This document shows positions 6,473 to 63,746 of a stretch of 64,000 nt of DNA, piece after piece. Made by a program: the position numbers and the translations under genes. Numbering within the stretch: the stretch's first letter is position 1; every line of letters starts with the position of its first letter. The notes under the pieces were generated by a model that worked only from the letters and a program-made list of their open reading frames with translations, was not told the DNA's origin and ran no database searches. The stretch lies in the IMG/VR virus record IMGVR_UViG_3300021338_000003, positions 62,001 through 126,000 of that record; one strand, written 5' to 3'.

Positions 6473-7279
6473 ATGGGTAAGTGGGCTCTATTATCTGGAG
6501 GCGGAGCATCTCGCGGAGCAGTACAGGTGGCACCACTGGAGACGCTATACGCCGAACATGGGCCCCCATCAATAGCGGTAGGCACTTCTATCGGGGCCGT
6601 TACCGTTTCAGCTCCTCCTAGCATGCTCAGAGAGGCATGGAGCACCGTCGATGGTGCCAAGACTTTCCAGTCACTGTCATGGTCACCATGGCGTGGTCTG
6701 TATACCTTGTCTCGCCTTCGGGCGATGCTTGACCGGTATGACGCGTGTACCGACCTTGTCTGTCCCACCTGGGTCGGCGTATATGATATGAGCCATCAAA
6801 AATATGAGCTGATCGCACTACATGACCTTGGCAACGTAGCGGACCGTCGTGATGCCGTAGTCGCCTCGTGCTCCATCCCTTTGATACACCAAGCGTGGCA
6901 CTTCCGAGGCCGTCCTCTGGCAGATGGAGGTGTTCGGTCGGTACTGGGAAGATTGCCCCGCACCGTAGACCCGACGACTATTGACGCAGTATGTGTGTTG
7001 GCATGTTCTCCGGTTGGTCGCCCCGCTCGCCGCAAAATACGCCCTGAACCAGCGGTTACCAACCTTATCGGTCAGATTGAGGTTTGCTACGAAGAATGGC
7101 AGTCTTCTGTGTCAGCAGCAGACCTCGGATATTTGCGCGAGCTTCCGACTCCAGTATACTTATGGTCACCGGAAACCTGGGAGGATATCGGTCCTTCTTT
7201 CGATGCTTCTGCAGCACGCGTTATGGACCGTCTTAGTCTGGGTGGTCGACTGCGGCCATTGACAGTATCTCGTGGTTGA
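6473..7279 (+). CDS. patatin-like phospholipase
   Basis: oxyanion loop LSGGGASRG, nucleophile elbow GTSIG, ASCSIP and catalytic DGG motifs in the correct order; GGAGG RBS. Confidence 0.9.
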   Translation: MGKWALLSGGGASRGAVQVAPLETLYAEHGPPSIAVGTSIGAVTVSAPPSMLREAWSTVDGAKTFQSLSWSPWRGLYTLSRLRAMLDRYDACTDLVCPTWVGVYDMSHQKYELIALHDLGNVADRRDAVVASCSIPLIHQAWHFRGRPLADGGVRSVLGRLPRTVDPTTIDAVCVLACSPVGRPARRKIRPEPAVTNLIGQIEVCYEEWQSSVSAADLGYLRELPTPVYLWSPETWEDIGPSFDASAARVMDRLSLGGRLRPLTVSRG

Positions 7280-7325: not shown

Positions 7326-7757
7326 GTGTCTAAGACTTTCGCCATCGTTAACGGCGACCTCAACATGTTGTCTACTGGCCAGCCTCAAATGCTTGAGGCA
7401 TATAACAAGCTCCAGCAGGATATCAACCAGGCCCTGGGGACTCCCTATGACGTCGACCGAGATTACGGAAATTCCTTGGTGACGGAGGGGGTCCTTCTAG
7501 CGGCTCGTGTTGCCATTCCGGCCCTGGTTCAACGCGAGGTTGGCCAGGTCATGTCACGCCTACGTCGGTTTCAGTCATATATACCCCGTCAGTATCTCCC
7601 AAGCACAGAAAAGATCGACCGGGTCAAATCGATTATTGTTTCCAGGCAGCAAAATCTCGGGGTAGCCTATCTGGTTACCGTTGCGGTCGTGTCCAAGCAG
7701 ACCCCTGATATCCGGTCCGTCTTCCGGGTGCGCAACGAGCACCTGAAGGAAAGGTGA
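7326..7757 (+). CDS. baseplate wedge protein, gp25/gpW-like
   Basis: size 143 aa, NGDL...KLQQDINQALGTP...DYG pattern, immediately upstream of a baseplate J-like gene. Confidence 0.65.
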   Translation: MSKTFAIVNGDLNMLSTGQPQMLEAYNKLQQDINQALGTPYDVDRDYGNSLVTEGVLLAARVAIPALVQREVGQVMSRLRRFQSYIPRQYLPSTEKIDRVKSIIVSRQQNLGVAYLVTVAVVSKQTPDIRSVFRVRNEHLKER

Positions 7758-7760
7758 TGT

Positions 7761-9158
7761 ATGGCGAGGACTCCCGATGAAGTCGTTTCCGACTTTGAAG
7801 ATGAATACCGTATTATCGACCCCTCGGTGGATGTACAAAAAGGGCCTGTGTACGACTTTGTACTTCGGCCCAACTCGCGTTTCGTTGCCGAATTGGAGGA
7901 AAGCCAGGATCGGACCGACCGACTTTCCAGCGGCGATTTCGCTTCTGCGGCTACGTCAGAAGAACTCATTCGGATGGCCGGGTCTGTGGGCACGGGACCG
8001 CTTTCTGGTAACGCGGCAACGACCACCCAAGTGTTTGGAACATATTCTCGGCCGAAGGCTGGACAGATAATCCCAATTCCTCAAGGAACCTTGGTGTCTT
8101 CCAGTGATGGTCAACTCATATTTCAGACAACCGGACCAGCCCAAATAGACGGCAACTTCTCTGACGTCTACTTCAATCCTTCTCGTCGTACATATGAGGT
8201 TGAAGTACCTATTCAAGCCGTCGCCGCGGGGTCAGTGTATAACCTTCCTCCCTTCCGCATTCGGAGTTTGGTGACGCCTATCAGCGGTATCGACTATACC
8301 GAGAATCGGAAACAAATCGATGATGGCCGCGCAGCGGGTACGGTCGAGGATCTTGTCGACAGAGCCCAGGCGGCTTTCCAAGGTCGGGAGCTTGGGACTA
8401 TTGGCGGACTAGAGCGTGCGGTCAAGGAAGCATTTGAGGGTGTAATCACCGACACTTCGGTGGTTACCTCTGCCGACCAAGTTTTGTTTCGGCGCATCGT
8501 TTCCGGACCTGCCTTGGATATATACTACGTAGGTAGTCGGTCGGTTGACGTATCCACAACCTTCACGGCAGACGGCGGAGAGCTGACTCTTACAATCCCT
8601 CAGAAACCGGTTCTGTCGGTAGAACAACTCTTGGTCAACGGGTCTGCTGTCACCTGGGAGCTTGTGGTTGATACGGACCCGGCCACTCGTGGATCCCTGA
8701 ACGACCAGTCATACATCTTGCTGCAAACGGCTCTTACCACTGGTGATGCTGTTTTCATCCGGTACAAATACGATTCCCTCACAGAGGCTATCAACACTTC
8801 ATTTGCAGGTGACCAGTCCTTGTTTGCAGTGAATACCCTCCCTCGTCGTCCTGTGGTTCAAGCCCCCAAACTTCAGATAGAAGCCAGGGCTATGTCTAAC
8901 TTCAACCCATTCACCCTGCGTTCCAACATCGAGTCCGTCACTGTGGATTTCTTTGTAGACGCCGGACTTGGGGCCTCGTTCTTGCCCACTTCCTTCTTGG
9001 ACTATTTGGAGAAGGAAGTGGTGGGTCTCGCGGGTCGCCCTACCTTGTCTATCTTTCAACTTCCGGCAAGATCCTTCTTGGACATTGAGCCCATATCCTT
9101 GAATGAAAACGAGGTCATAGAAATAGACTTTGACATCATAGACTTGGATGTCCAGTAA
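7761..9158 (+). CDS. baseplate J-like protein (gp6/gpJ family)
   Basis: IPIPQGTLVSS...FQTT, VPIQAVAAGSVYN, ISGIDYTEN...DGRAAGTVEDLVDRA and GTIGG, all typical of Baseplate_J. Confidence 0.85.
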   Translation: MARTPDEVVSDFEDEYRIIDPSVDVQKGPVYDFVLRPNSRFVAELEESQDRTDRLSSGDFASAATSEELIRMAGSVGTGPLSGNAATTTQVFGTYSRPKAGQIIPIPQGTLVSSSDGQLIFQTTGPAQIDGNFSDVYFNPSRRTYEVEVPIQAVAAGSVYNLPPFRIRSLVTPISGIDYTENRKQIDDGRAAGTVEDLVDRAQAAFQGRELGTIGGLERAVKEAFEGVITDTSVVTSADQVLFRRIVSGPALDIYYVGSRSVDVSTTFTADGGELTLTIPQKPVLSVEQLLVNGSAVTWELVVDTDPATRGSLNDQSYILLQTALTTGDAVFIRYKYDSLTEAINTSFAGDQSLFAVNTLPRRPVVQAPKLQIEARAMSNFNPFTLRSNIESVTVDFFVDAGLGASFLPTSFLDYLEKEVVGLAGRPTLSIFQLPARSFLDIEPISLNENEVIEIDFDIIDLDVQ

Positions 9159-12620: not shown

Positions 12621-15600
12621 ATGGCCTTCGAGCTTTTCATTCCCTACCGCAGCAACGGCAACGACGCCTCGTTGGACATCATCTCGCGGTTTGCCCGTAT
12701 CTTGCGCAAGGGCTTCGTGAACGCCTGGCAGGACTCGACTCAGAATGTAGTCAGTGAGTCTATCGCCCCTCTCATCGTTCCTCGCTCTGGGTCCCTCAAT
12801 GTGGATGTTACTCCGGGTTCTGGTATCGGGTGGATGGCCCTATCCAACGACGGGATGGTCATCCGAGAGCAGACTAGCACCCATGGGCCTCTCACGGTTG
12901 CAGCAAGCACCAAGAATTACATCGTGCTCCGCGCGTTGTACGCTCCCTCTACTGGCGGTGAGGTTGTTGAGTTTCAGTCCCTGACTGAAGCCGACTACAA
13001 TGCATCTCCAGTTAAGAGCCAACTTATCATTGTCGGGACTTTGACTCTGGGCGCCACCTCGGATGCCTCCACGGGTACGGTGTCCTATGATGAACGGGAC
13101 CGAGTTGAAGGATTCTTCGACACTCCCTGGCGCCCTTCGGTGGACACCTTCGCCAACCTCCCTACTTCCAGCAATGATATCTTGAAGACTGGTGATACTG
13201 TCATTGTTCGGGATTCTTTCACCATGTATGTGTGGAATGGGTCGGCCTGGGTCACCGCTGGCGGTGCTGCATCCCTACATGTGGCCGCTGGCATCACTGA
13301 TGCTTATCGGGTGGACCAAGATCGGGCTGTTCAGGGAAGTGGTATCCTGGCTGGTGGTCTGGATTCAAGCCAGCCTTTTGCTCGTCTCCCCGGCCTCCAG
13401 GTCCATAGCATGGCCGCTGCACGCACTATCGGCCTTGGTGAGATGCGTCTCATCATCAATGGATTTGGGTTCAAAACCAAGCACATCGACTACCAGATGA
13501 CGGCCCCTCCCGGTGTTGGGACCCGGTATGACCTCTTGTACTTGGAGATGTACCGGATGGAGGTCGCCAGCCCCTCGGCCGTGACCTTCGACAATTACAC
13601 CGGGTCCTCTGTGTCTTTGGGTACGGTCATTACCGCCATGGAGAGCCTGTCAGCCAAGAGTGATGAGACCGGAGCATCCATTGATTTTGGGCCCATCGAA
13701 CGGACCGCTGACAACAAATACCTCATCACTGTCTACTCCATTCGTGAGGAGTCGGACCTCTCGGCCAGCACCGTGGCTGACCCCTACGACCTCGCCACCT
13801 ACTCGGTGGCTCCCACCAATTCTGATGGGAATACCTGGTCTTATGGTGCCAACTCCTATGATGACCGTGTGTGGTATGCCACACACTCTTCGGCCTATGG
13901 CACCCATTCCTATGGCATGCCTTTGGTGATGATTAAGCGGGACTCCAGTGAGAGTCTGGGCGTTCTGACCAGCCTGAGTGGAGAGAATCTCATCTTCCCG
14001 ATTCATCCAGTGTGTGATACGGGCGGCTACATTCGTGGGTTGCTGGAAGGTTTGTCCAATGCCCGGAGTTCCTCCCAGGATGCCCGCCTACCCTCCGGTG
14101 TTAAGGAGACCACGCCCTGGAACGGTCCGTCCAGTGGGTACAGTGGTGGTATGAAGCTTTCTATTGCTGGGTACAACCTCGAAGTGACCGAGGCCACTAC
14201 CCGACCCATCAGCACGCCGAGTGCCCCCACTACCGGTGCACGGCGTGACTTGGTGTATGCCACCCTGAACCTCGTGGCCTTCACCGACCCTGCGGGCACC
14301 GGTCGTCAAATCATCCCACTGGGTGAATTTCGTGAGGTTCCCTATTCTAGCACGTATATGAAGGAAGTTTATGCTCAGGTCGAGTTCCACATGGAGGGCG
14401 TGGGTCAGGTAGAGGATGTTGATGACGCTTTTGCTGCCCTGGGGTATTCCCGCATACCTGGGGACCCGGGACTATTTGGTATCGCAGATGTCAGCTTCGA
14501 CCCACGTCTCAACTTTGACCAGGTGACGTATGCCATCCCGATCGCAGTGGTTGAGCGTCGCAACACTGGTACTTGGGATGCCTCTACTAACCCCAATGGC
14601 GGTGCCTCTCGTCCTGACTCCCTCACGACTTCCATTGTGAATAAGGACATCACCAGTTGGTCCCACTTGGTGGGTCTGGATCGCCATGACATAGAACAAC
14701 TCCTACACCGTTCGACGGATTCCCTCTTGCGTGGGGATCTTCCTACGAACATTGTGAGGCATCCGACTCACTCTGGAGTGGCTGGCCGACGTTTCCTGAT
14801 GACGGAGGCTATTGGTGTAACCTCGGCTGGATATCGGGAGCTTCCCGCTGCACCTGATGGTTTCCGGACGGCCTGGTCCGATGCCGTGGAACTCCGTCCT
14901 TTTGGTACCTCGTTTCTGGTTCACACCGGGTCCTTCTCTGGTCCTATCTTCTCATATGACTCGGGTACAGGCCAGCTGGACATCGTCATGCCTACAGGGA
15001 TGTCGATATACATCACCGCTACGGATCCGACGGCCTTCCACTTTGTGGGATACGAAAGTGCTGGGCCGCCTTCTCTTCCGAAGGTTAGCACCGCAGGCTG
15101 GAATACCGTCGGGTCTGAGTCTGGAGCAGTCACCGGTATTTCCGGATTCACCATCAACAATACGGATTCCTTTGGGTATCCGACTGATGTGACGTGTACC
15201 CTGACTTTCACTGGTACAGGATTGGTACGGTTCTTCTTCTGGGCCATTATGCAGAGGTCGGACACCGACGTACAGCATCAAGACAATGGCGGCCTCCTCC
15301 TGCCTCCGGATGATATCATCCAGATCGAAACCGGTGGTGGGTTCACCACGCCCATCTCCACCACTCCGTTGGTGGCATCCTTGGAAGCCACCCTCTCTGG
15401 TGACACGGCAACCTTCGACCTGGCCAACCTCACCGCGGCCATTGATACCCCTGGAACCCCGACGTACTTGGGCGTGATGGCTGCCTCTGTGGAAAATGTC
15501 TCTCGGTCTGGTTATTCCTACACGGCCACAATCAACGATGCTCAGACCGAGGCTGTCGTAACCCTGTCTACGGCTGCTCATACCGGTGAGACGTGTCGAA

Positions 15601-29953: not shown

Positions 29954-29982
29954 ATCCGGTGTTCCAACCTGGAGACTCTCAA

Positions 29983-31131
29983 ATGCAGCACGGCAAGTTC
30001 AACATCTTCCTCGACAGCCAACACGGTAGCAGCGGGAAGGGTCTCATGACCCCTTTTCTGGCTGACCGGTATGAGTCCCGGTGTGTCAGCACTGCCAACT
30101 TCCCCAACGCCGGCCACGTCACCCGTCGTGCCGATGGGTCTGTGTTCATGGCCAAGGCCATTGCTACGGCAGCGTTCCTGAACCGGTATGGACAGACCGT
30201 GGACGCCTACATCTCCCCTGGTTCGGGGTTCTACCCCGAACGGTTCCTCTTCGAGTGGAACGAGTGCGGACGGCCCGATGTCTACATCCACGGCCGCGCT
30301 TCTGTGGTCACCGAAGACCATGCTGCTCGGGAGCGGGAAGGCAAGCAGTCCACCAAGCATATCGCGTCCACCATGCAGGGGTCTGGGGTTGCCATCTCCG
30401 ATAAGGTGATGCGGGGTCAGGGTATCCTTCTGGCTCGGAACATCGATTGGGAGCTTGAGGCCAAGAAGGTTGGCATCGATGGCGACCTTTCCTCTATCCA
30501 CGTTCTGTCTGCCCAGGACTTCCGAAACCGGGTATTTGAGGAAATCCCCAAGACTACGTGGCTTCACGAGGGTAGTCAGGGGTATGCCCTATCCATTGAC
30601 CACGGAAGCCACTACCCCCAGTGTACCTCGCGCAACTGTTCTGCCCAGGCAGCCATGGACTACATGGCCATCCCCCCGAAGATGGTCGGGGATGTCTACT
30701 TGAACGTTCGCACTTTTCCAATCCGGGTTGGCAACGTCAAGGATGACGATGGCAATGTCCTGGGATATTCTGGAGACTTCTACCCTGACCAGACCGAAAT
30801 CACCTGGGACAAAATTGCCGATGACGCCGGATTCCCCCCGGAGGCCAAGGCCGAGCTGTTCAAGAAGGAACATACCTCGGTCACCAAGCGCCTGCGCCGG
30901 GTCAGCACCCTATCCTATTCGGCGCTCCGCGACGCTGTCCGAGTCAATGGTTGCACGAAGCTTGCTTTGAACTTCGTGCACTACAACGACTACAAGGACC
31001 TTGGAGTGACCGAGTTCGCCAAGCTTTCCCAGAAGACTAGAGAGATGGTTGACCGCTTGGAAGATGAGACCGGCGTTCGAGTGGCTCTCATTGGTACCAG
31101 CGCCTTCCACGAGACGGTAATCCTACGGTAG
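29983..31131 (+). CDS. purZ: N6-succino-2-amino-2'-deoxyadenylate synthase PurZ (adenylosuccinate synthetase paralogue)
   Basis: DSQHGSSGKG (Ser at the PurA catalytic Asp), PNAGH, IASTMQG, EGSQG, YPQCTSR, PIRVG, SGDFYPDQTEITW, TSVTKRLRR, and LNF in place of the PurA TKLD GTP motif; GGAGA RBS before ATG 29983. Confidence 0.85.
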   Translation: MQHGKFNIFLDSQHGSSGKGLMTPFLADRYESRCVSTANFPNAGHVTRRADGSVFMAKAIATAAFLNRYGQTVDAYISPGSGFYPERFLFEWNECGRPDVYIHGRASVVTEDHAAREREGKQSTKHIASTMQGSGVAISDKVMRGQGILLARNIDWELEAKKVGIDGDLSSIHVLSAQDFRNRVFEEIPKTTWLHEGSQGYALSIDHGSHYPQCTSRNCSAQAAMDYMAIPPKMVGDVYLNVRTFPIRVGNVKDDDGNVLGYSGDFYPDQTEITWDKIADDAGFPPEAKAELFKKEHTSVTKRLRRVSTLSYSALRDAVRVNGCTKLALNFVHYNDYKDLGVTEFAKLSQKTREMVDRLEDETGVRVALIGTSAFHETVILR

Positions 31132-35244: not shown

Positions 35245-37143
35245 ATGGCCAAGAGCAAGGAATATAACAAGGACTCCATTCGCCAGCTCCAAGGGCTGGA
35301 ACCCATCCGCCTGCGCCCCGGCATGTATGTGGGTGGTTCGGGCAAGGGAGGATTCCACCATATCCTATGGGAGGTCATCGACAACTCGGTCGATGAATTC
35401 CTGGCCAATCACTGCACCAAGATTCGGGTTCGGATCGATACCAAGCGCAACGTGGCTTCTGTCGAGGACGACGGACGAGGCATTCCTACCGAGACTCACG
35501 CCCAGACTGGCGAACCCACTATCGTATCGATCTTCACCAAACTTCACATGGGCGGGAAGTTCGAACGAGGTGAGGCGTATGCCCTATCCGGCGGTCTCCA
35601 TGGTGTTGGTGCCAAGGCCACCTGTGCCCTATCCGATCGGATGACCGTTTGGTCCTTCCGGGGTAAGAGGGTATACCGGGCTGATTTCTCGAAGGGAAAG
35701 ACTGTCAAGCATGGTCCTGACAAGAAGTCCAAGCCTCGGCCACATGGAACCAAGGTCATGTTCCACCCAGACCCTGAGATCTTCCGAAAGATCAAGTTCG
35801 ACGTGGACCTCATCCGGAATCGAATCCGGTCTACCTCTCACCTCTGCCCAGGTCTCACCATTCTGTTGGTGATCGATGGTAACAAACCCGAGGTATTCAA
35901 GTCCTCTGAGGGTCTGTCCGGTCTTCTGCGGGAGCACTTGGGCAAAGAAGAGCCCCTGTTCGATGAGCCTCTTACCTTCAACCTCCATGACTCGGAGACC
36001 AAAGAGGGCATCGAGGTCTCCATGTGGTGGACCGATGGTGATGGGGAGAAGTGGTACACCTTCGTCAATATGATTGACATCGAAGGTGGGTCCTATGAGC
36101 CTGGTGCTAAGTCCGCAATCACCAGGGAACTCAAGAAATTCTGCAAGGCCGACAAGGTGTCGGGTGATGATTTCCGAGACGGTATGCGGGTGGCCTGTCA
36201 CATCAAGCTCCGGGACCCCCAGTTCGAGGGCCAGACCAAGAACAAGCTCAACAACCCGGAGATGTCCAGTATTGCGGAAAGGGTGTTTGGGGCGCGGCTC
36301 CGAAACTTCCTATCGAAGAACCCGGCCATTACCAAGAAGATCATTACCCGTGCCACTGAGCTTGCCAAGGCCCGGGCAGCCTACAAGGCCAGCCGGAAGA
36401 TCGCCACCCAGACAGCCTATGCCAAGGACCCATCCTCTCGTCGAGGGCTGCCGATGAAGCTCACGGCTGCGCTGGGATGCAAGGCCGAAGACCGCGAACT
36501 CTTCATTGTTGAGGGTGGGTCGGCTGGTGGCTCCGCTATCCGCGGTCGCGACGGAAAGTGTCAAGAGGTTTTGGCACTTCGGGGAAAGATCCCCAATGTC
36601 ACTCCCATCACTGACATGGTGAAGCTTTCGAAGGTGTTCGAGAATGAGGAGATCGACGCCATTATTCGGTCCGTAGGGGCAGGACACGACCTGGAGATGC
36701 CTGGTGAGTCCTGTGACCCCGAGAAGGCACGGGTAGGCAAGGTGGTTCTCTTGACCGATGCCGATGCCGATGGTGGCCACATCGATGCCCTCCTCCTAGG
36801 TTTCATGCTTCGATTCATGTACCCACTGGTGGAGAAGGGTATGGTGTGGGTGGCCCGTCCTCCCCTTTTCGTGGCCAAGTGGGGCAACAACCGGGTATAT
36901 GGTGACTCCCGGGAGGAGGTCATCGGTCTGGCTCAGAAGAAGGGCGTGAAGAAGCCCCAGGTAAGCCGGTTCAAGGGTCTAGGTGAGATGAATGCAGCCG
37001 AGTTGGCCGAAACCAGCATGAGCCACAAGACCCGCCGTCTACAGCAAATCACCGCCGATCGGTCTAGCATTCAGAAGGTCATTGACCTGATGGGGTCGGA
37101 CTCGACCGCCCGTAAGCAACTCTTGCTGGGGGATGACGCGTGA
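35245..37143 (+). CDS. gyrB: type IIA DNA topoisomerase subunit B (GyrB/ParE-like)
   Basis: LQGLEPIRLRPGMYVG, EVIDNSVDE, DDGRGIP, GGLHGVG (GHKL ATPase); FEGQTK; ELFIVEGGSAGG, LRGKI, TDADADGGHI, RFKGLGEMN (TOPRIM). Confidence 0.95.
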   Translation: MAKSKEYNKDSIRQLQGLEPIRLRPGMYVGGSGKGGFHHILWEVIDNSVDEFLANHCTKIRVRIDTKRNVASVEDDGRGIPTETHAQTGEPTIVSIFTKLHMGGKFERGEAYALSGGLHGVGAKATCALSDRMTVWSFRGKRVYRADFSKGKTVKHGPDKKSKPRPHGTKVMFHPDPEIFRKIKFDVDLIRNRIRSTSHLCPGLTILLVIDGNKPEVFKSSEGLSGLLREHLGKEEPLFDEPLTFNLHDSETKEGIEVSMWWTDGDGEKWYTFVNMIDIEGGSYEPGAKSAITRELKKFCKADKVSGDDFRDGMRVACHIKLRDPQFEGQTKNKLNNPEMSSIAERVFGARLRNFLSKNPAITKKIITRATELAKARAAYKASRKIATQTAYAKDPSSRRGLPMKLTAALGCKAEDRELFIVEGGSAGGSAIRGRDGKCQEVLALRGKIPNVTPITDMVKLSKVFENEEIDAIIRSVGAGHDLEMPGESCDPEKARVGKVVLLTDADADGGHIDALLLGFMLRFMYPLVEKGMVWVARPPLFVAKWGNNRVYGDSREEVIGLAQKKGVKKPQVSRFKGLGEMNAAELAETSMSHKTRRLQQITADRSSIQKVIDLMGSDSTARKQLLLGDDA

Positions 37144-56707: not shown

Positions 56708-59700
56708 ATGGACTCGTTGCCGAGAAAGCCCCGCAAGAAGTCGTGCCTGGGATGCCCTCTGAAAGGTCAAAGGAACTCCGAATGGTTGCTTCCTACGGTA
56801 TACACCCCTGACCCCGAGGGACACGTAGACATCCTCTTCGTCTTGGACTCACCTGACTATCAGGCCAATGAGACGAAGAGCCTGAAGAATCATAGTCATG
56901 TGGCTTTCATTAACAAGTGGCTTAAGAAGGGTCTATCCCGTCGGGGGAAGGTCAGAAAGCTAGGACGAGGCATTGCGTTTACCTCGGCGACCCGATGCAT
57001 CCCTTTGGATAAGAAGAAGTCCAAGAGAAAGCCCGAAAGTGAGGAGCTGAACCGATGCATTGACTACACCACTCGGGATATGGCGGAATTGGCCCCAAAG
57101 TTGACGGTTCTATTGGGGTCCTCGGCTATCCACTCGATGTTCCCTCATGCTGGTGGAGCCACTGCATCTGCCGGAACCGTTGAAGAAGACCCCCTAGGCA
57201 ACCTCATCTTCTTTGCTTATAGCCCTGCTTTCGTTGAACTTTCGAATGACCCCGAAGTTCTTCGGGAATGGAAGAAGCAAGTCATCCGGATTCTTGAGCT
57301 GGCCGGCTGGGTCAAGGATAAGCACGCCCCCAAGAGCCGCGGTGTTGTCATCGAAGTGGGCGACGATTTCGAGGTATCTGGGGACTACCCTACCTGTGCC
57401 GAAGAGGTCAAATCCATCTACATCGACGATGTAGAGAAGGTGTTCAAGCTGGCCAAGAAGATGCAAAGTCTGCCTAAGGGCGCGGTCATATGCTCTGATA
57501 CCGAGGCCAACAACCTCTTTCGGGCATTTGATAACAAAATGCTATCCGTTCAGTTCGGATGGGATGGAAAGTCGGGATATGTAGTCCCCTACCACCACCG
57601 GAAGAGTCCCTTCAATGCCGATGACAAGAAAGCCATCTATGACTGCATGCAAGACCTTTTCACGACCCGCACCAAGAACGGCGGGTTGTGGTGTTTTGCC
57701 AATGCAGCATATGATATGCATCAATTTCGACGGGAGTTTGAGTGTGAACTCCTCTCTATGGACAATGTAGACGTTTCCCAGGTTGCCCACCTGTTGGACG
57801 AGAACAGGCTCCAAGGGACCCGGGACCCTGAGTGCTACTACCAAGGAAAGCGAGGTCTGTCTCTAGCCGTCCTATCCGAAGTGTACCTCGGGGTTGTCCT
57901 CTCTTCTGAAGATAAGAGAGAGCGTGCGTCCATCCGCCGTTGGCCTATGAAGCGTTTCGTCCCCTACGCCGCTGGGGATGTTGTGTGGCCCTGGCAAATC
58001 CTCCAGAAACAGCTCCTACAAGCTGATGACCAGGATTACCGGCGGCCTCTGCTCCGCCTAATTCGATTTCTTCTGTCTCCCGCCAACCTCTTGGTGGTTG
58101 AGATGGAACAGAATGGATTTCCGGTCGATCTGGAGCACACTCGGAGAATTCGCGGTGCTGCTAGCCCCCTGATTGCCGAGAAAAAGCGCCTGATGGGCCT
58201 TCTATCCAAGACGCGGGGCGGGAAGAAGGCCAACAAAATTATCAATGGTCGGGCAGCCCGGGGTAATCACTATCTCTTCGGAGAGCCCCCATTCAGTCTC
58301 AAGCCATCCAAGGCCAACCACCGGGAGACATTGTTCCTCGACGTTCTGCGGTACAAGCCACTCACCTTCACCGAGCAGGGTGCACCCCAAATCAACTCCG
58401 AGTTCTACAAAGAATATGGAGTGTGGGATGATAATGATGAACCCCAGAATGAAGCGGCCATCATATCAGATTGGGTCGGGGTCGACAAGCTCCTGTCCTC
58501 GTTTGTCAAGAACTTCTACGCTTTGGTTGACCCCGACCGTGGGCATCCAGACATGGTGTGGGATTGCCGCGTCCGTCCGTCTATTCGTCTGGCTGCCACT
58601 ACATCGGGCCGCCCTGCTATCAAAAACCCAGCCATGCAGCAAATCCCTCGGGCCACCGATTCCTACCGGAAGGACGTCAAGGACATGTTTGTGTCCGAAG
58701 AGGGGAAGGTCCTCATCCTGGCAGACCTCAAGGCCAACGAGGTCCGATGGGGTGCCATCAATGCCCAGGCCAAGATTCTAGGAAACCTGTTTCAGGACGG
58801 TCTCAAGGCAGTCAAGAGATTCCGGAAGTTTGCCGATTCCCTGGAAGGCACGGACAAGAGGGCATATCAGGAGTGGCTGCGTCTCGCTGAGGTCAAGGAG
58901 TTGTCTGGCAAGCAGAAGCGGACCAAGATCAAGATCGAGAGACGGCCGAAGATGAAAAAGCTCTTGAAGCTTGCCGAAGAGGCGTCCCTTCGAGGAGACA
59001 TCCACAAGCAGACCGCCTCTACCTTCTATTCGGTGCCCCTCAAGGAAGTCAGTAAGGGGCTTCGTCAGGATACCAAGGCGGTCATTTTCGGTCATATCGC
59101 TGCTCGTGGACCCAAGGCCATTTCCGAGCAGATTGGAAAGAGCATTGACGAAACAAAGGCACTCCTCCGTGATTTTGACCGCAAGTTCCCGGGCCTTGCC
59201 AAACACCTCAATGATAATGCCCGTCTGGCCGAGTCCCGAGGGTATACCGAAGGACCTCAGGGTCGTCGACGTCGGTTCGCTCGGGCTGTTTGGTCAGACC
59301 CTGAAGAGTGGGTGCAGGCCAAGGCCCGGCGCCAGGCCCGGAACAACGGCATCCAGGGCTCGGCATCTGATGCCTGTCTGGTGGCCGGATTCCAGCTCTT
59401 GGACTACATCCGGAAGAATGACAAGAGCTGGAAGCTCCTGAATATGGTGCATGATGCCCTGTATATCGAAGTCCCTGTTTCCGAACTTCCGGCCGCCCTG
59501 GAGGCCGTCGAGCTATCTTTGACCGATTGGACCATGGAGTGGATGTCCGAGAAGTTTGGAATCAACTTCGTGGCTCCTCTTGAGGCTGATGTGGATGCTG
59601 GTCTATCCTGGGGAACATACGTGACCTGGAACGGCACCCAACCTCATATCGATGTGGTCATGGAGTGGGTCAAAGCCCAGCACACCAAGAAATGGGGTTG

Positions 59701-59764
59701 GGACGGTGTCGATGAATCCATGAGGCCCGATCGAAGTGGCGAGGTCCAGTCTGTCATGCTATAA
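56708..59764 (+). CDS. polA: family A DNA polymerase with N-terminal family-4 uracil-DNA-glycosylase-like domain and 3'-5' exonuclease
   Basis: UDG-like CLGCPL, TRCIP, ELNRC, LLGSSA; exonuclease DTE, NAAYD, YAAGD; polymerase TSGR...PAMQQIPR, motif A DLKANEVR, motif B RQDTKAVIFG, NNGIQG, motif C VHD; AGGAGG RBS. Confidence 0.92.
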   Translation: MDSLPRKPRKKSCLGCPLKGQRNSEWLLPTVYTPDPEGHVDILFVLDSPDYQANETKSLKNHSHVAFINKWLKKGLSRRGKVRKLGRGIAFTSATRCIPLDKKKSKRKPESEELNRCIDYTTRDMAELAPKLTVLLGSSAIHSMFPHAGGATASAGTVEEDPLGNLIFFAYSPAFVELSNDPEVLREWKKQVIRILELAGWVKDKHAPKSRGVVIEVGDDFEVSGDYPTCAEEVKSIYIDDVEKVFKLAKKMQSLPKGAVICSDTEANNLFRAFDNKMLSVQFGWDGKSGYVVPYHHRKSPFNADDKKAIYDCMQDLFTTRTKNGGLWCFANAAYDMHQFRREFECELLSMDNVDVSQVAHLLDENRLQGTRDPECYYQGKRGLSLAVLSEVYLGVVLSSEDKRERASIRRWPMKRFVPYAAGDVVWPWQILQKQLLQADDQDYRRPLLRLIRFLLSPANLLVVEMEQNGFPVDLEHTRRIRGAASPLIAEKKRLMGLLSKTRGGKKANKIINGRAARGNHYLFGEPPFSLKPSKANHRETLFLDVLRYKPLTFTEQGAPQINSEFYKEYGVWDDNDEPQNEAAIISDWVGVDKLLSSFVKNFYALVDPDRGHPDMVWDCRVRPSIRLAATTSGRPAIKNPAMQQIPRATDSYRKDVKDMFVSEEGKVLILADLKANEVRWGAINAQAKILGNLFQDGLKAVKRFRKFADSLEGTDKRAYQEWLRLAEVKELSGKQKRTKIKIERRPKMKKLLKLAEEASLRGDIHKQTASTFYSVPLKEVSKGLRQDTKAVIFGHIAARGPKAISEQIGKSIDETKALLRDFDRKFPGLAKHLNDNARLAESRGYTEGPQGRRRRFARAVWSDPEEWVQAKARRQARNNGIQGSASDACLVAGFQLLDYIRKNDKSWKLLNMVHDALYIEVPVSELPAALEAVELSLTDWTMEWMSEKFGINFVAPLEADVDAGLSWGTYVTWNGTQPHIDVVMEWVKAQHTKKWGWDGVDESMRPDRSGEVQSVML

Positions 59765-62604: not shown

Positions 62605-62928
62605 ATGAACGAGTTGTATATCAAGGTTAAGCTCACCGACCTGGTGTTTGACCAGTATGGGTGTGAAATTCTGGACCAGACTATGGATATTGACGCTAAC
62701 AATATCCTTGATGTCTGTAGAAACCTGGGTATGGAAACACATCCTGATGGACACAACGAAACACTGATTGGGACCCCCCAACAGATACTGAGGGTCATGA
62801 AAGGGCTGGTAGCAGCAATAGAGAAGGCCAGAGAAGACCAAGCAATTGCAGAATTGGCCGCTGTCATTCCCTCTTCTGAGACGCAGGTGGCGTTCTCTGA
62901 TAACCACCTTGCTGAGGACCCGTTCTGA
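62605..62928 (+). CDS. hypothetical protein
   Basis: AGGAG RBS. Confidence 0.6.
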   Translation: MNELYIKVKLTDLVFDQYGCEILDQTMDIDANNILDVCRNLGMETHPDGHNETLIGTPQQILRVMKGLVAAIEKAREDQAIAELAAVIPSSETQVAFSDNHLAEDPF

Positions 62929-63746
62929 TGTGGCACTTCGTTGACCTCTGCTGTGGGTCCGGCGCCATTACGTTGCATCTTCTGGGTGCCCGGAAGGCCA
63001 TTCTACCCTACCAGGGGTCGAAGTGGAAGCTTCGGGGGCATATTGCCTCATACTGTCCGGGAGGGGCACCCCAGACCGTAACCCTAGTGGACCCAAGTCC
63101 CTGGTCCGAAACCCTAGGTGTTGTTATAAACCCCAAGAAGCGAGAACAACTAGTATCGTACCTGGAATGTCTTGCAGCAAAAGACCCCCGGGAAGTGTAC
63201 GACTCTTTGCAGGGCCATTCGGTTCCAGAAGACCTCATTGAAAGGGCTGGTCAACACCTGTTCCTTCAGCGTCTTGCATTTTCTGGGAAAGCGGTAGGGG
63301 TTAACAGAGGCAATTGGAGCAGCCCGGGGTTCAATGGTAGTAGTGCCTATGGTATTCCGGCTACGGATAAGTTTGGGGCCATCAATCCTATGATTCCGTC
63401 CCTCATCAAAACATTGAAGAGTTACAACCTGGAACCCACCCTGGTTAGAACGCGTCGAGGCAGAGCCGCGGTTCCAGAAAAGGTTCCGCCCAACACCTTT
63501 GTGTACATTGACCCTCCATACCAGTTAGCCACACCATACCCGGATGGTTCTCTGGGCCGCGATGAGGTTATCTGGTTGGCTCAACAATGGAGGGAGAGGG
63601 GGGCTAGCGTCCTAATCTCTGAAAGGGAGCCGATTGTCATCCCTGGCGGAGGTTGGTGGGTCAAGAATATTACAGCCGGGCGAGATATTGACTCCCCGTT
63701 CGTCGGAAAGCATAGTGAGTGGCTAACTGGGAGCAACGACTTATGA
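62928..63746 (+). CDS. Dam-like (D12 class) amino-DNA methyltransferase with rearranged motif order
   Basis: FVDLCCGSGA (SAM motif I), LPYQGSK (motif X), AFSG, FVYIDPPY (catalytic motif IV), VLISE, EWL. Confidence 0.8.
   Translation: MWHFVDLCCGSGAITLHLLGARKAILPYQGSKWKLRGHIASYCPGGAPQTVTLVDPSPWSETLGVVINPKKREQLVSYLECLAAKDPREVYDSLQGHSVPEDLIERAGQHLFLQRLAFSGKAVGVNRGNWSSPGFNGSSAYGIPATDKFGAINPMIPSLIKTLKSYNLEPTLVRTRRGRAAVPEKVPPNTFVYIDPPYQLATPYPDGSLGRDEVIWLAQQWRERGASVLISEREPIVIPGGGWWVKNITAGRDIDSPFVGKHSEWLTGSNDL

Follow-up and report, generated by a model that had tools for sequence, protein, structure and literature searches.

The 2-aminoadenine (Z) biosynthesis pathways of bacteriophages have been described in two layouts, one consisting of PurZ, DatZ and MazZ/DUF550 (PurZ goes with DatZ plus MazZ-2 or DUF550), and the other of PurZ0, DutZ and DmtZ. 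The first is represented by the phages phiVC8/VP2, S-2L and Acinetobacter phage SH-Ab 15497 (NCBIfam NF038379; PDB entries 6fm1, 6fko and 7odx), with genomes of 38-67 kb and purZ clustered with datZ, mazZ and dpoZ, and the second by actinophages such as Wayne, Ghobes and their relatives (PDB entry 7vf6; PMC12884076), where the Dut-family gene lies within about 2 kb of the synthetase gene. Characterised DutZ proteins hydrolyse dATP and dGTP (and dUTP) to the monophosphates (PMC12884076) and have so far been tied to PurZ0 phages. In a collection of 50,697 phage records, all isolates with a PurZ or PurZ0 homologue have genomes of 38-83 kb, and no record above 83 kb has a PurZ homologue. The papers that could be searched describe seven groups of Z-phages without mentioning jumbo phages, and searches for PurZ together with jumbo, huge or Myoviridae phages found nothing relevant, although one paper states that over 2,000 viruses have been predicted to carry dZ-DNA from PurZ homology (PMC13128860), so that contigs like the one described here may already sit uncommented in such lists.

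The window analysed here (64,000 nucleotides, bases 62,001-126,000 of a 250,817-nt contig that was also assembled independently at 250,454 nt) contains an ORF on the + strand at 29959/29983..31131, which in public gene calls on two independent assemblies starts from the ATG at 29983, with a GGAG-like site upstream, and encodes a 382-aa homologue of adenylosuccinate synthetase. The observation made in the preliminary description, namely that this protein carries the motifs DSQHGSSGKG, TSVTKRLRR and LNFVHY, is confirmed, with the motifs located at residues 11-20, 298-306 and 329-334, respectively. The protein matches Pfam PF00709 (E=7.8e-25) and PHROG 1211, "2-aminooxy adenylosuccinate synthetase" (E=6e-50), so this is not a chance ORF. 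Among solved structures, the best sequence matches are PurZ of S-2L (7odx, E=1.5e-26) and of phiVC8 (6fm1/6fko, E=4e-24), followed by PurA of Pyrococcus (E=4e-22) and PurZ0 (7vf6, E=6e-11). The best hit among curated models is the NCBIfam PurZ model, but the score is 178 bits (178.2), below the 300-bit cut-off, whereas the positive controls SH-Ab 15497 and Bm1 reach 421 (421.5) and 320 bits. The archaeal-type PurA model scores nearly as well, at 149 bits, all curated PurA models score far below their cut-offs, and homologues on huge contigs behave the same way. The curated PurZ model misses this clade, so automated annotation calls these genes plain adenylosuccinate synthetase.

A full HMMER scan of 1.84 billion cluster representatives detects 1,652 clusters (at 50% identity) at E<=1e-3 and 155 at E<=1e-30, so that the clade is large and the uncharacterised diversity of this enzyme exceeds the characterised part. 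Every one of the 132 representatives with a detectable P-loop, among those of the nearest 150 clusters, has the G-S-x-GKG motif, with Ser in the position of Asp13 of PurA, and 118 of 120 close homologues also have this Ser. Two trees, one of 146 sequences and a more careful maximum likelihood tree of 64 sequences, both rooted on E. coli PurA alone, without an archaeal PurA outgroup, agree in that PurZ0 is monophyletic (support 99/86) and splits first, and everything else, including the window protein and all six canonical PurZ, forms the PurZ side (100/99). Within the PurZ side, the window protein belongs to a clade of 26 rows (100/99) that contains no characterised enzyme, and to an 8-row "large-contig" clade (98/96), separate from the clade that holds Bm1, VP2, ZP6, S-2L, SH-Ab 15497 and PMBT28.

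Of the 12 positions published as discriminating PurZ from PurA (bioRxiv 10.1101/2025.10.22.683976), nine are PurZ-like, namely (phiVC8 numbering) S14, T262, P233, Y244, W252, S/T273, N294, F295 and Y298. In particular, the GSSGKG P-loop has Ser16 in place of the PurA catalytic Asp, and T298, N330, F331 and Y334 match T262, N294, F295 and Y298 of phiVC8 PurZ, the last three forming the N-F-x-x-Y pocket of the ATP/dATP type. The Asp that specifies guanine and is kept by PurA and PurZ0 is His here (H333) and Gln in the clade, so that N-F-V-H takes the place of T-K-L-D. Like every characterised PurZ and PurZ0, the protein has a hydrophobic residue within the Arg-rich segment T-x-V-T-K-R-x-R-R. By contrast, position F12, which is said to help accommodate the 2-amino group, is His in this protein and Trp in most of the clade, as in E. 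coli PurA.

An AlphaFold model built from a 64-sequence alignment has a pLDDT of 97.1, and a Foldseek search started with this model identifies PurZ of phiVC8 (6fm1, 7e-27, TM 0.86) and S-2L (7odx, 1e-26, TM 0.85) as the best hits. However, the predicted fold is about equally close to the short archaeal-type PurA of Pyrococcus horikoshii (PDB entries 5k7x/2d7u, NCBIfam NF003295; TM 0.90, rmsd 2.4 A), with PurZ0 behind (TM 0.79) and bacterial PurA structures ranking below PurZ. The protein shares with the archaeal enzyme the C-terminal segment (the PDB match covers residues 285-379), but the latter has the catalytic Asp and the GTP-specific motif. Compared to the canonical PurZ, to which it is only 29-36% identical, the window protein carries a 13-residue insertion after W275, a clade-specific feature, and retains the long C-terminal segment that canonical PurZ has shortened and that resembles the one in PurZ0. 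Thus, on present evidence, this is a PurZ-side enzyme with an ATP-type pocket, rather than PurA or PurZ0, in an uncharacterised clade.

The preliminary description also placed the gene in a large genome with baseplate J, gp25 and a type II topoisomerase of its own, and most of these statements hold. The contig comes from samples recorded as JGI 3300021338, ENA ERZ650668 and SRR7054529. By walking, bases 55,024-211,683 and 225,804-250,817 of the contig were recovered (181.7 kb, or 72%), with no mismatch in the overlaps checked. The Baseplate J (baseplate wedge) gene at 7761-9158 (+), indicative of a contractile-tail-type virion, is confirmed (PHROG 6, E=1.4e-20; Pfam Baseplate_J, E=4.5e-10), as is the GyrB-like large subunit of type II topoisomerase at 35245-37143 (+) (PHROG 543, E=1.7e-127; Pfam HATPase_c, DNA_gyraseB, Toprim and DNA_gyraseB_C), the partner subunit of which (DNA_topoisoIV) is encoded outside the window. 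The gp25 assignment could not be confirmed because 7326-7757 has no family hit. The contig also encodes a sigma factor, a class II RNR with an intein, RecA, a primase and an SNF2 helicase. The family-A DNA polymerase at 56708-59764 (+) (1018 aa) combines an N-terminal UDG-superfamily domain with a 3'-5' exonuclease and is closest, at about 25% identity, to the polymerases of jumbo myophages with genomes of 227-313 kb, namely Dickeya phages JA29 and AD1, Erwinia phage Yoloswag, and Pseudomonas phages PaBG and Lu11. These phages have a similar genome size and a T4-type split topoisomerase II, but a search of isolates detects no nucleotide-level relative of the contig. The polymerase is not DpoZ-like, given that the match to DpoZ of SH-Ab 15497 is weak and spans only 60 residues and that the nearest isolates are not Z-phages, and, unlike in the PurZ0 pathway of actinophages, it is not of the DpoZ-1 type. 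The contrast drawn in the preliminary description with small sipho- and podoviruses is slightly too strong, as Burkholderia phage Bm1 (67.5 kb) has a baseplate-wedge gene together with a canonical polA-purZ-datZ cluster.

The statement that neither datZ nor mazZ lies beside purZ is correct, as no HD, MazG, DUF550, dUTPase or NDT domain is detectable anywhere in the 64-kb window. In the 181.7 kb recovered, BLAST, phmmer and Pfam searches found no HD_3/DatZ, MazZ (MazG), DUF550, DUF5664, NDT/DmtZ or DpoZ; tblastn and phmmer searches with DatZ, MazZ, DUF550 and NDT references from SH-Ab 15497, S-2L, VP2, Bm1, ZP6, PMBT28, Sapo, DrRobert and Galactica yielded nothing except a dUTPase. The only HD protein found, at contig positions 238,822-239,337, was considered as a candidate DatZ but rejected because its PDB matches are Rel/SpoT hydrolase domains, MESH1 and small alarmone hydrolases.

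The dUTPase, a 144-aa protein of the trimeric type encoded at contig positions 143,375-143,806, 50 kb downstream of purZ and 17 kb past the right end of the window, is the only other gene found that appears specific to the pathway. It is 45-48% identical to DutZ of Sapo, DrRobert and Galactica, compared to 32% identity with E. coli Dut. Of the 484 matching phage records, the first ~135 are all PurZ0-group phages (100-139 bits), after which the scores break to 86 bits or less, including those for non-Z actinophages. In a phylogenetic tree, this protein falls in a clade (100/93) with four DutZ references that excludes six non-Z dUTPases. A 13-kb contig from a true relative of this phage (topoisomerase subunits 63% identical) keeps the same dUTPase at 69% identity, and in another uncultured phage contig, a DutZ-like gene directly follows a PurZ0-like gene. 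Nevertheless, dUTPase is a common phage gene and DutZ of Wayne still prefers dUTP, so that membership in the DutZ clade does not prove a role in the Z pathway; furthermore, no large PurZ-bearing contig appeared among the 81 database relatives of the dUTPase. The 347-aa gene abutting the dUTPase gene, and conserved with it in a relative, was considered as a DmtZ/NDT candidate but rejected given that its model (pLDDT 69) resembles tail-tube or tail-terminator proteins with an Ig-like domain.

These observations appear best compatible, with moderate confidence, with a dispersed, hybrid pathway in a jumbo, myophage-like genome. In this scenario, the synthetase would condense dGMP with aspartate, using ATP or dATP as the phosphate donor, to give N6-succino-2-amino-2'-deoxyadenylate, which host PurB and host kinases would convert to dZTP; the DutZ-like enzyme would remove the competitor dATP and supply the PurZ substrate dGMP; and the UDG-exo-PolA polymerase of the phage would incorporate dZTP opposite T. 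The homology, clade placement, diagnostic residues, predicted fold, genome size and gene positions, as well as the DutZ-clade membership of the dUTPase, rest on direct analysis, whereas the activities and substrate specificities of both enzymes, the use of host PurB and kinases, the acceptance of dZTP by the polymerase, and the presence of Z in the DNA and the degree of A-to-Z replacement are inferred. The interpretation offered in the preliminary description, a large myophage lineage that partly or fully replaces A with Z through a dispersed, non-canonical pathway, is therefore supported only in part: the PurZ type of the enzyme, the jumbo genome with myophage-like relatives and, through the distant DutZ-clade gene, the dispersed layout gain support, but the score falls below the curated cut-off, the clade lacks a characterised member, 28% of the contig lies outside the search, and Z in the DNA remains an inference. 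What differs from the published layouts is the pairing of a PurZ-side, ATP-type synthetase with a DutZ-like dNTPase; in this view, parts of the two pathways are exchangeable modules, and a 250-kb genome that replaces adenine would need several-fold more dZTP per virion, produced with a differently assembled toolkit.

Among the alternatives, it is possible, although less likely, that the enzyme is a genuine dGMP-using PurZ but Z substitution is only partial or conditional, or that dZTP/dZMP serves another purpose, such as perturbing the nucleotide pool or host replication, the reason being that the phage would lack a dedicated dATP triphosphohydrolase and a Z-selective polymerase. The absence of DatZ and DpoZ from the recovered sequence is compatible with this possibility, and S-2L and the engineered E. 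coli systems described in the literature rely on dATP removal for full replacement (PMC8342488). In addition, the window encodes a D12-class N6-adenine DNA methyltransferase-like protein at 62928-63746 (+) (PF02086, 24.5 bits against a cut-off of 22, E=2.7e-5; PHROG 56), which bears on whether adenine persists in the DNA that it targets and would be odd if no adenine remained, although it could act on host DNA. However, a DutZ-clade enzyme is present, DutZ enzymes remove dATP efficiently (kcat about 13 per second for Ghobes), S-2L achieves full substitution with a non-selective PrimPol polymerase (PMC8065100), and the recovered sequence covers only 72% of the contig. It is still less likely that the protein acts on a different substrate, such as another 2-substituted purine nucleotide or a ribo- rather than deoxyribonucleotide, in which case the clade would not be a Z-DNA marker at all. 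The score below the PurZ cut-off and the nearly equal score against the archaeal PurA model, the His/Trp at position 12, the clade-specific insertion and long C-terminal segment, the lack of a characterised clade member, and the location of relatives on other huge contigs beside ThyX, RNR, NT5C and clamp-loader genes rather than Z-cluster genes are compatible with this reading, but Ser at the Asp13 position, T262 and the hydrophobic residue in the Arg-rich segment are shared with every characterised PurZ and PurZ0, the clade nests inside the PurZ side, and a DutZ-clade enzyme is encoded in the same genome. An ordinary PurA-like auxiliary metabolic gene that boosts AMP synthesis from IMP, Asp and GTP during infection is very unlikely: although phages do carry PurA paralogues (of 481 PF00709 proteins in NCBI viruses, only about 147 are PurZ/PurZ0; PMC12884076), the catalytic Asp13, 99% conserved in true PurA, is Ser here, the guanine-binding K and D of the (S/T)KxD motif are replaced by F and H, and the profile and fold comparisons described above argue against it.

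A broader hypothesis, which is tentative, is that a large, previously unrecognised clade of PurZ-side synthetases marks jumbo and huge phages (200-436 kb contigs, several unrelated lineages) that build Z-substituted genomes without DatZ, MazZ or DpoZ, with a DutZ-type dNTPase borrowed from the PurZ0 pathway working, in this lineage, with an ordinary UDG-exo-PolA replicase. If so, these would be by far the largest genomes with a wholesale non-canonical base, and the pathway would have a third layout. Close homologues of the synthetase (50-58% identity) are encoded on contigs of 197-436 kb. Three of these large-contig relatives are syntenic with each other, sharing a clamp loader, ThyX, a sigma-like gene and a conserved neighbour of ~230 aa, but have no gene other than the synthetase in common with this phage, and the DutZ-like gene was not seen on the other large PurZ-bearing contigs. 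The synthetase gene is therefore spread across unrelated large-phage lineages. Finally, a search of the first 32 kb of the window yields a weak hit to DUF1599, "nucleotide modification associated domain 1" (E=1.1e-4), for which nine candidate ORFs tested negative.

Several cluster representatives of the PurZ-like clade (protein ids P0122, P0123, P0124, P0128, P0130, P0133, P0136, P0138, P0146 and P0151) are 750-1200 aa long and match the 382-aa query in 2-3 separate stretches; they look like intein-interrupted purZ-like genes. In three large-contig relatives, a conserved protein of about 230-264 aa with no family assignment stays next to, or near, the PurZ-like gene (positions 13435-14163 on the minus strand of contig L006, 8889-9593 of L018 and 9162-9956 of L019). 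These proteins are 53-58% identical to each other, and the family is a candidate functional partner of the PurZ-like gene in those lineages but is absent from the window phage. In an approximately 59 kb contig (ENA ERZ18631488 scaffold_105, here L038), a PurZ0-like gene (GSEGKG; Asp retained in "TFMDY") is located directly upstream of a DutZ-like gene, with guaA- and guaB-like genes nearby; this contig also carries RF-1, OmpA and ABC-transporter genes.

In the window phage, the gene that abuts the dUTPase start codon (L022:10418-11458, a locus of the recovered sequence corresponding to contig positions 142,335-143,375) encodes a 347-aa protein and is conserved together with the dUTPase in a relative (51% identity). 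The structural model of this protein resembles tail-tube or tail-terminator proteins with an Ig-like C-terminal domain, which makes it an odd neighbour for a dUTPase. A 172-aa HD_4 protein with an LHDVVEDT motif is encoded at contig positions 238,822-239,337 (L029:13019-13534). Its nearest solved structures are Rel/SpoT hydrolase domains, MESH1 and small alarmone hydrolases; this protein is probably a (p)ppGpp-type hydrolase. A 279-aa protein encoded at contig positions 205,880-206,716 (L039:15211-16047) contains a strong InPase domain (PF18823, inorganic pyrophosphatase, E=4e-39) and could pull pyrophosphate-releasing dNTP hydrolysis forward.

Within the window, one ORF in the 1-32000 region gives a weak Pfam hit to DUF1599, "Nucleotide modification associated domain 1" (E=1.1e-4), which could be relevant to nucleotide metabolism; however, nine candidate ORFs tested negative. 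The gene at 62928-63746 is similar to D12-class N6-adenine DNA methyltransferases, with a score just above the Pfam cut-off (24.5 vs 22 bits), and the target of the predicted enzyme would be unclear if the phage DNA lacks adenine. The family-A DNA polymerase encoded at 56708-59764 carries an N-terminal UDG-superfamily domain ahead of the 3'-5' exonuclease and polymerase domains.

The virion-structure block also includes a gene for a patatin-like phospholipase (6473-7279, E=1.6e-12), which is located two genes upstream of the Baseplate_J gene. A pentapeptide-repeat protein (Pfam Pentapeptide, E=3e-24) is encoded in the right half of the window (32000-64000). Beyond the window, in the gene set from contig positions 165,000-201,684 and 225,804-250,817, the families include both a class II (B12-dependent) ribonucleotide reductase and an intein splicing domain, along with RecA, an SNF2 helicase, a DnaG-type primase, GH46, Metallophos and two GNAT acetyltransferases.
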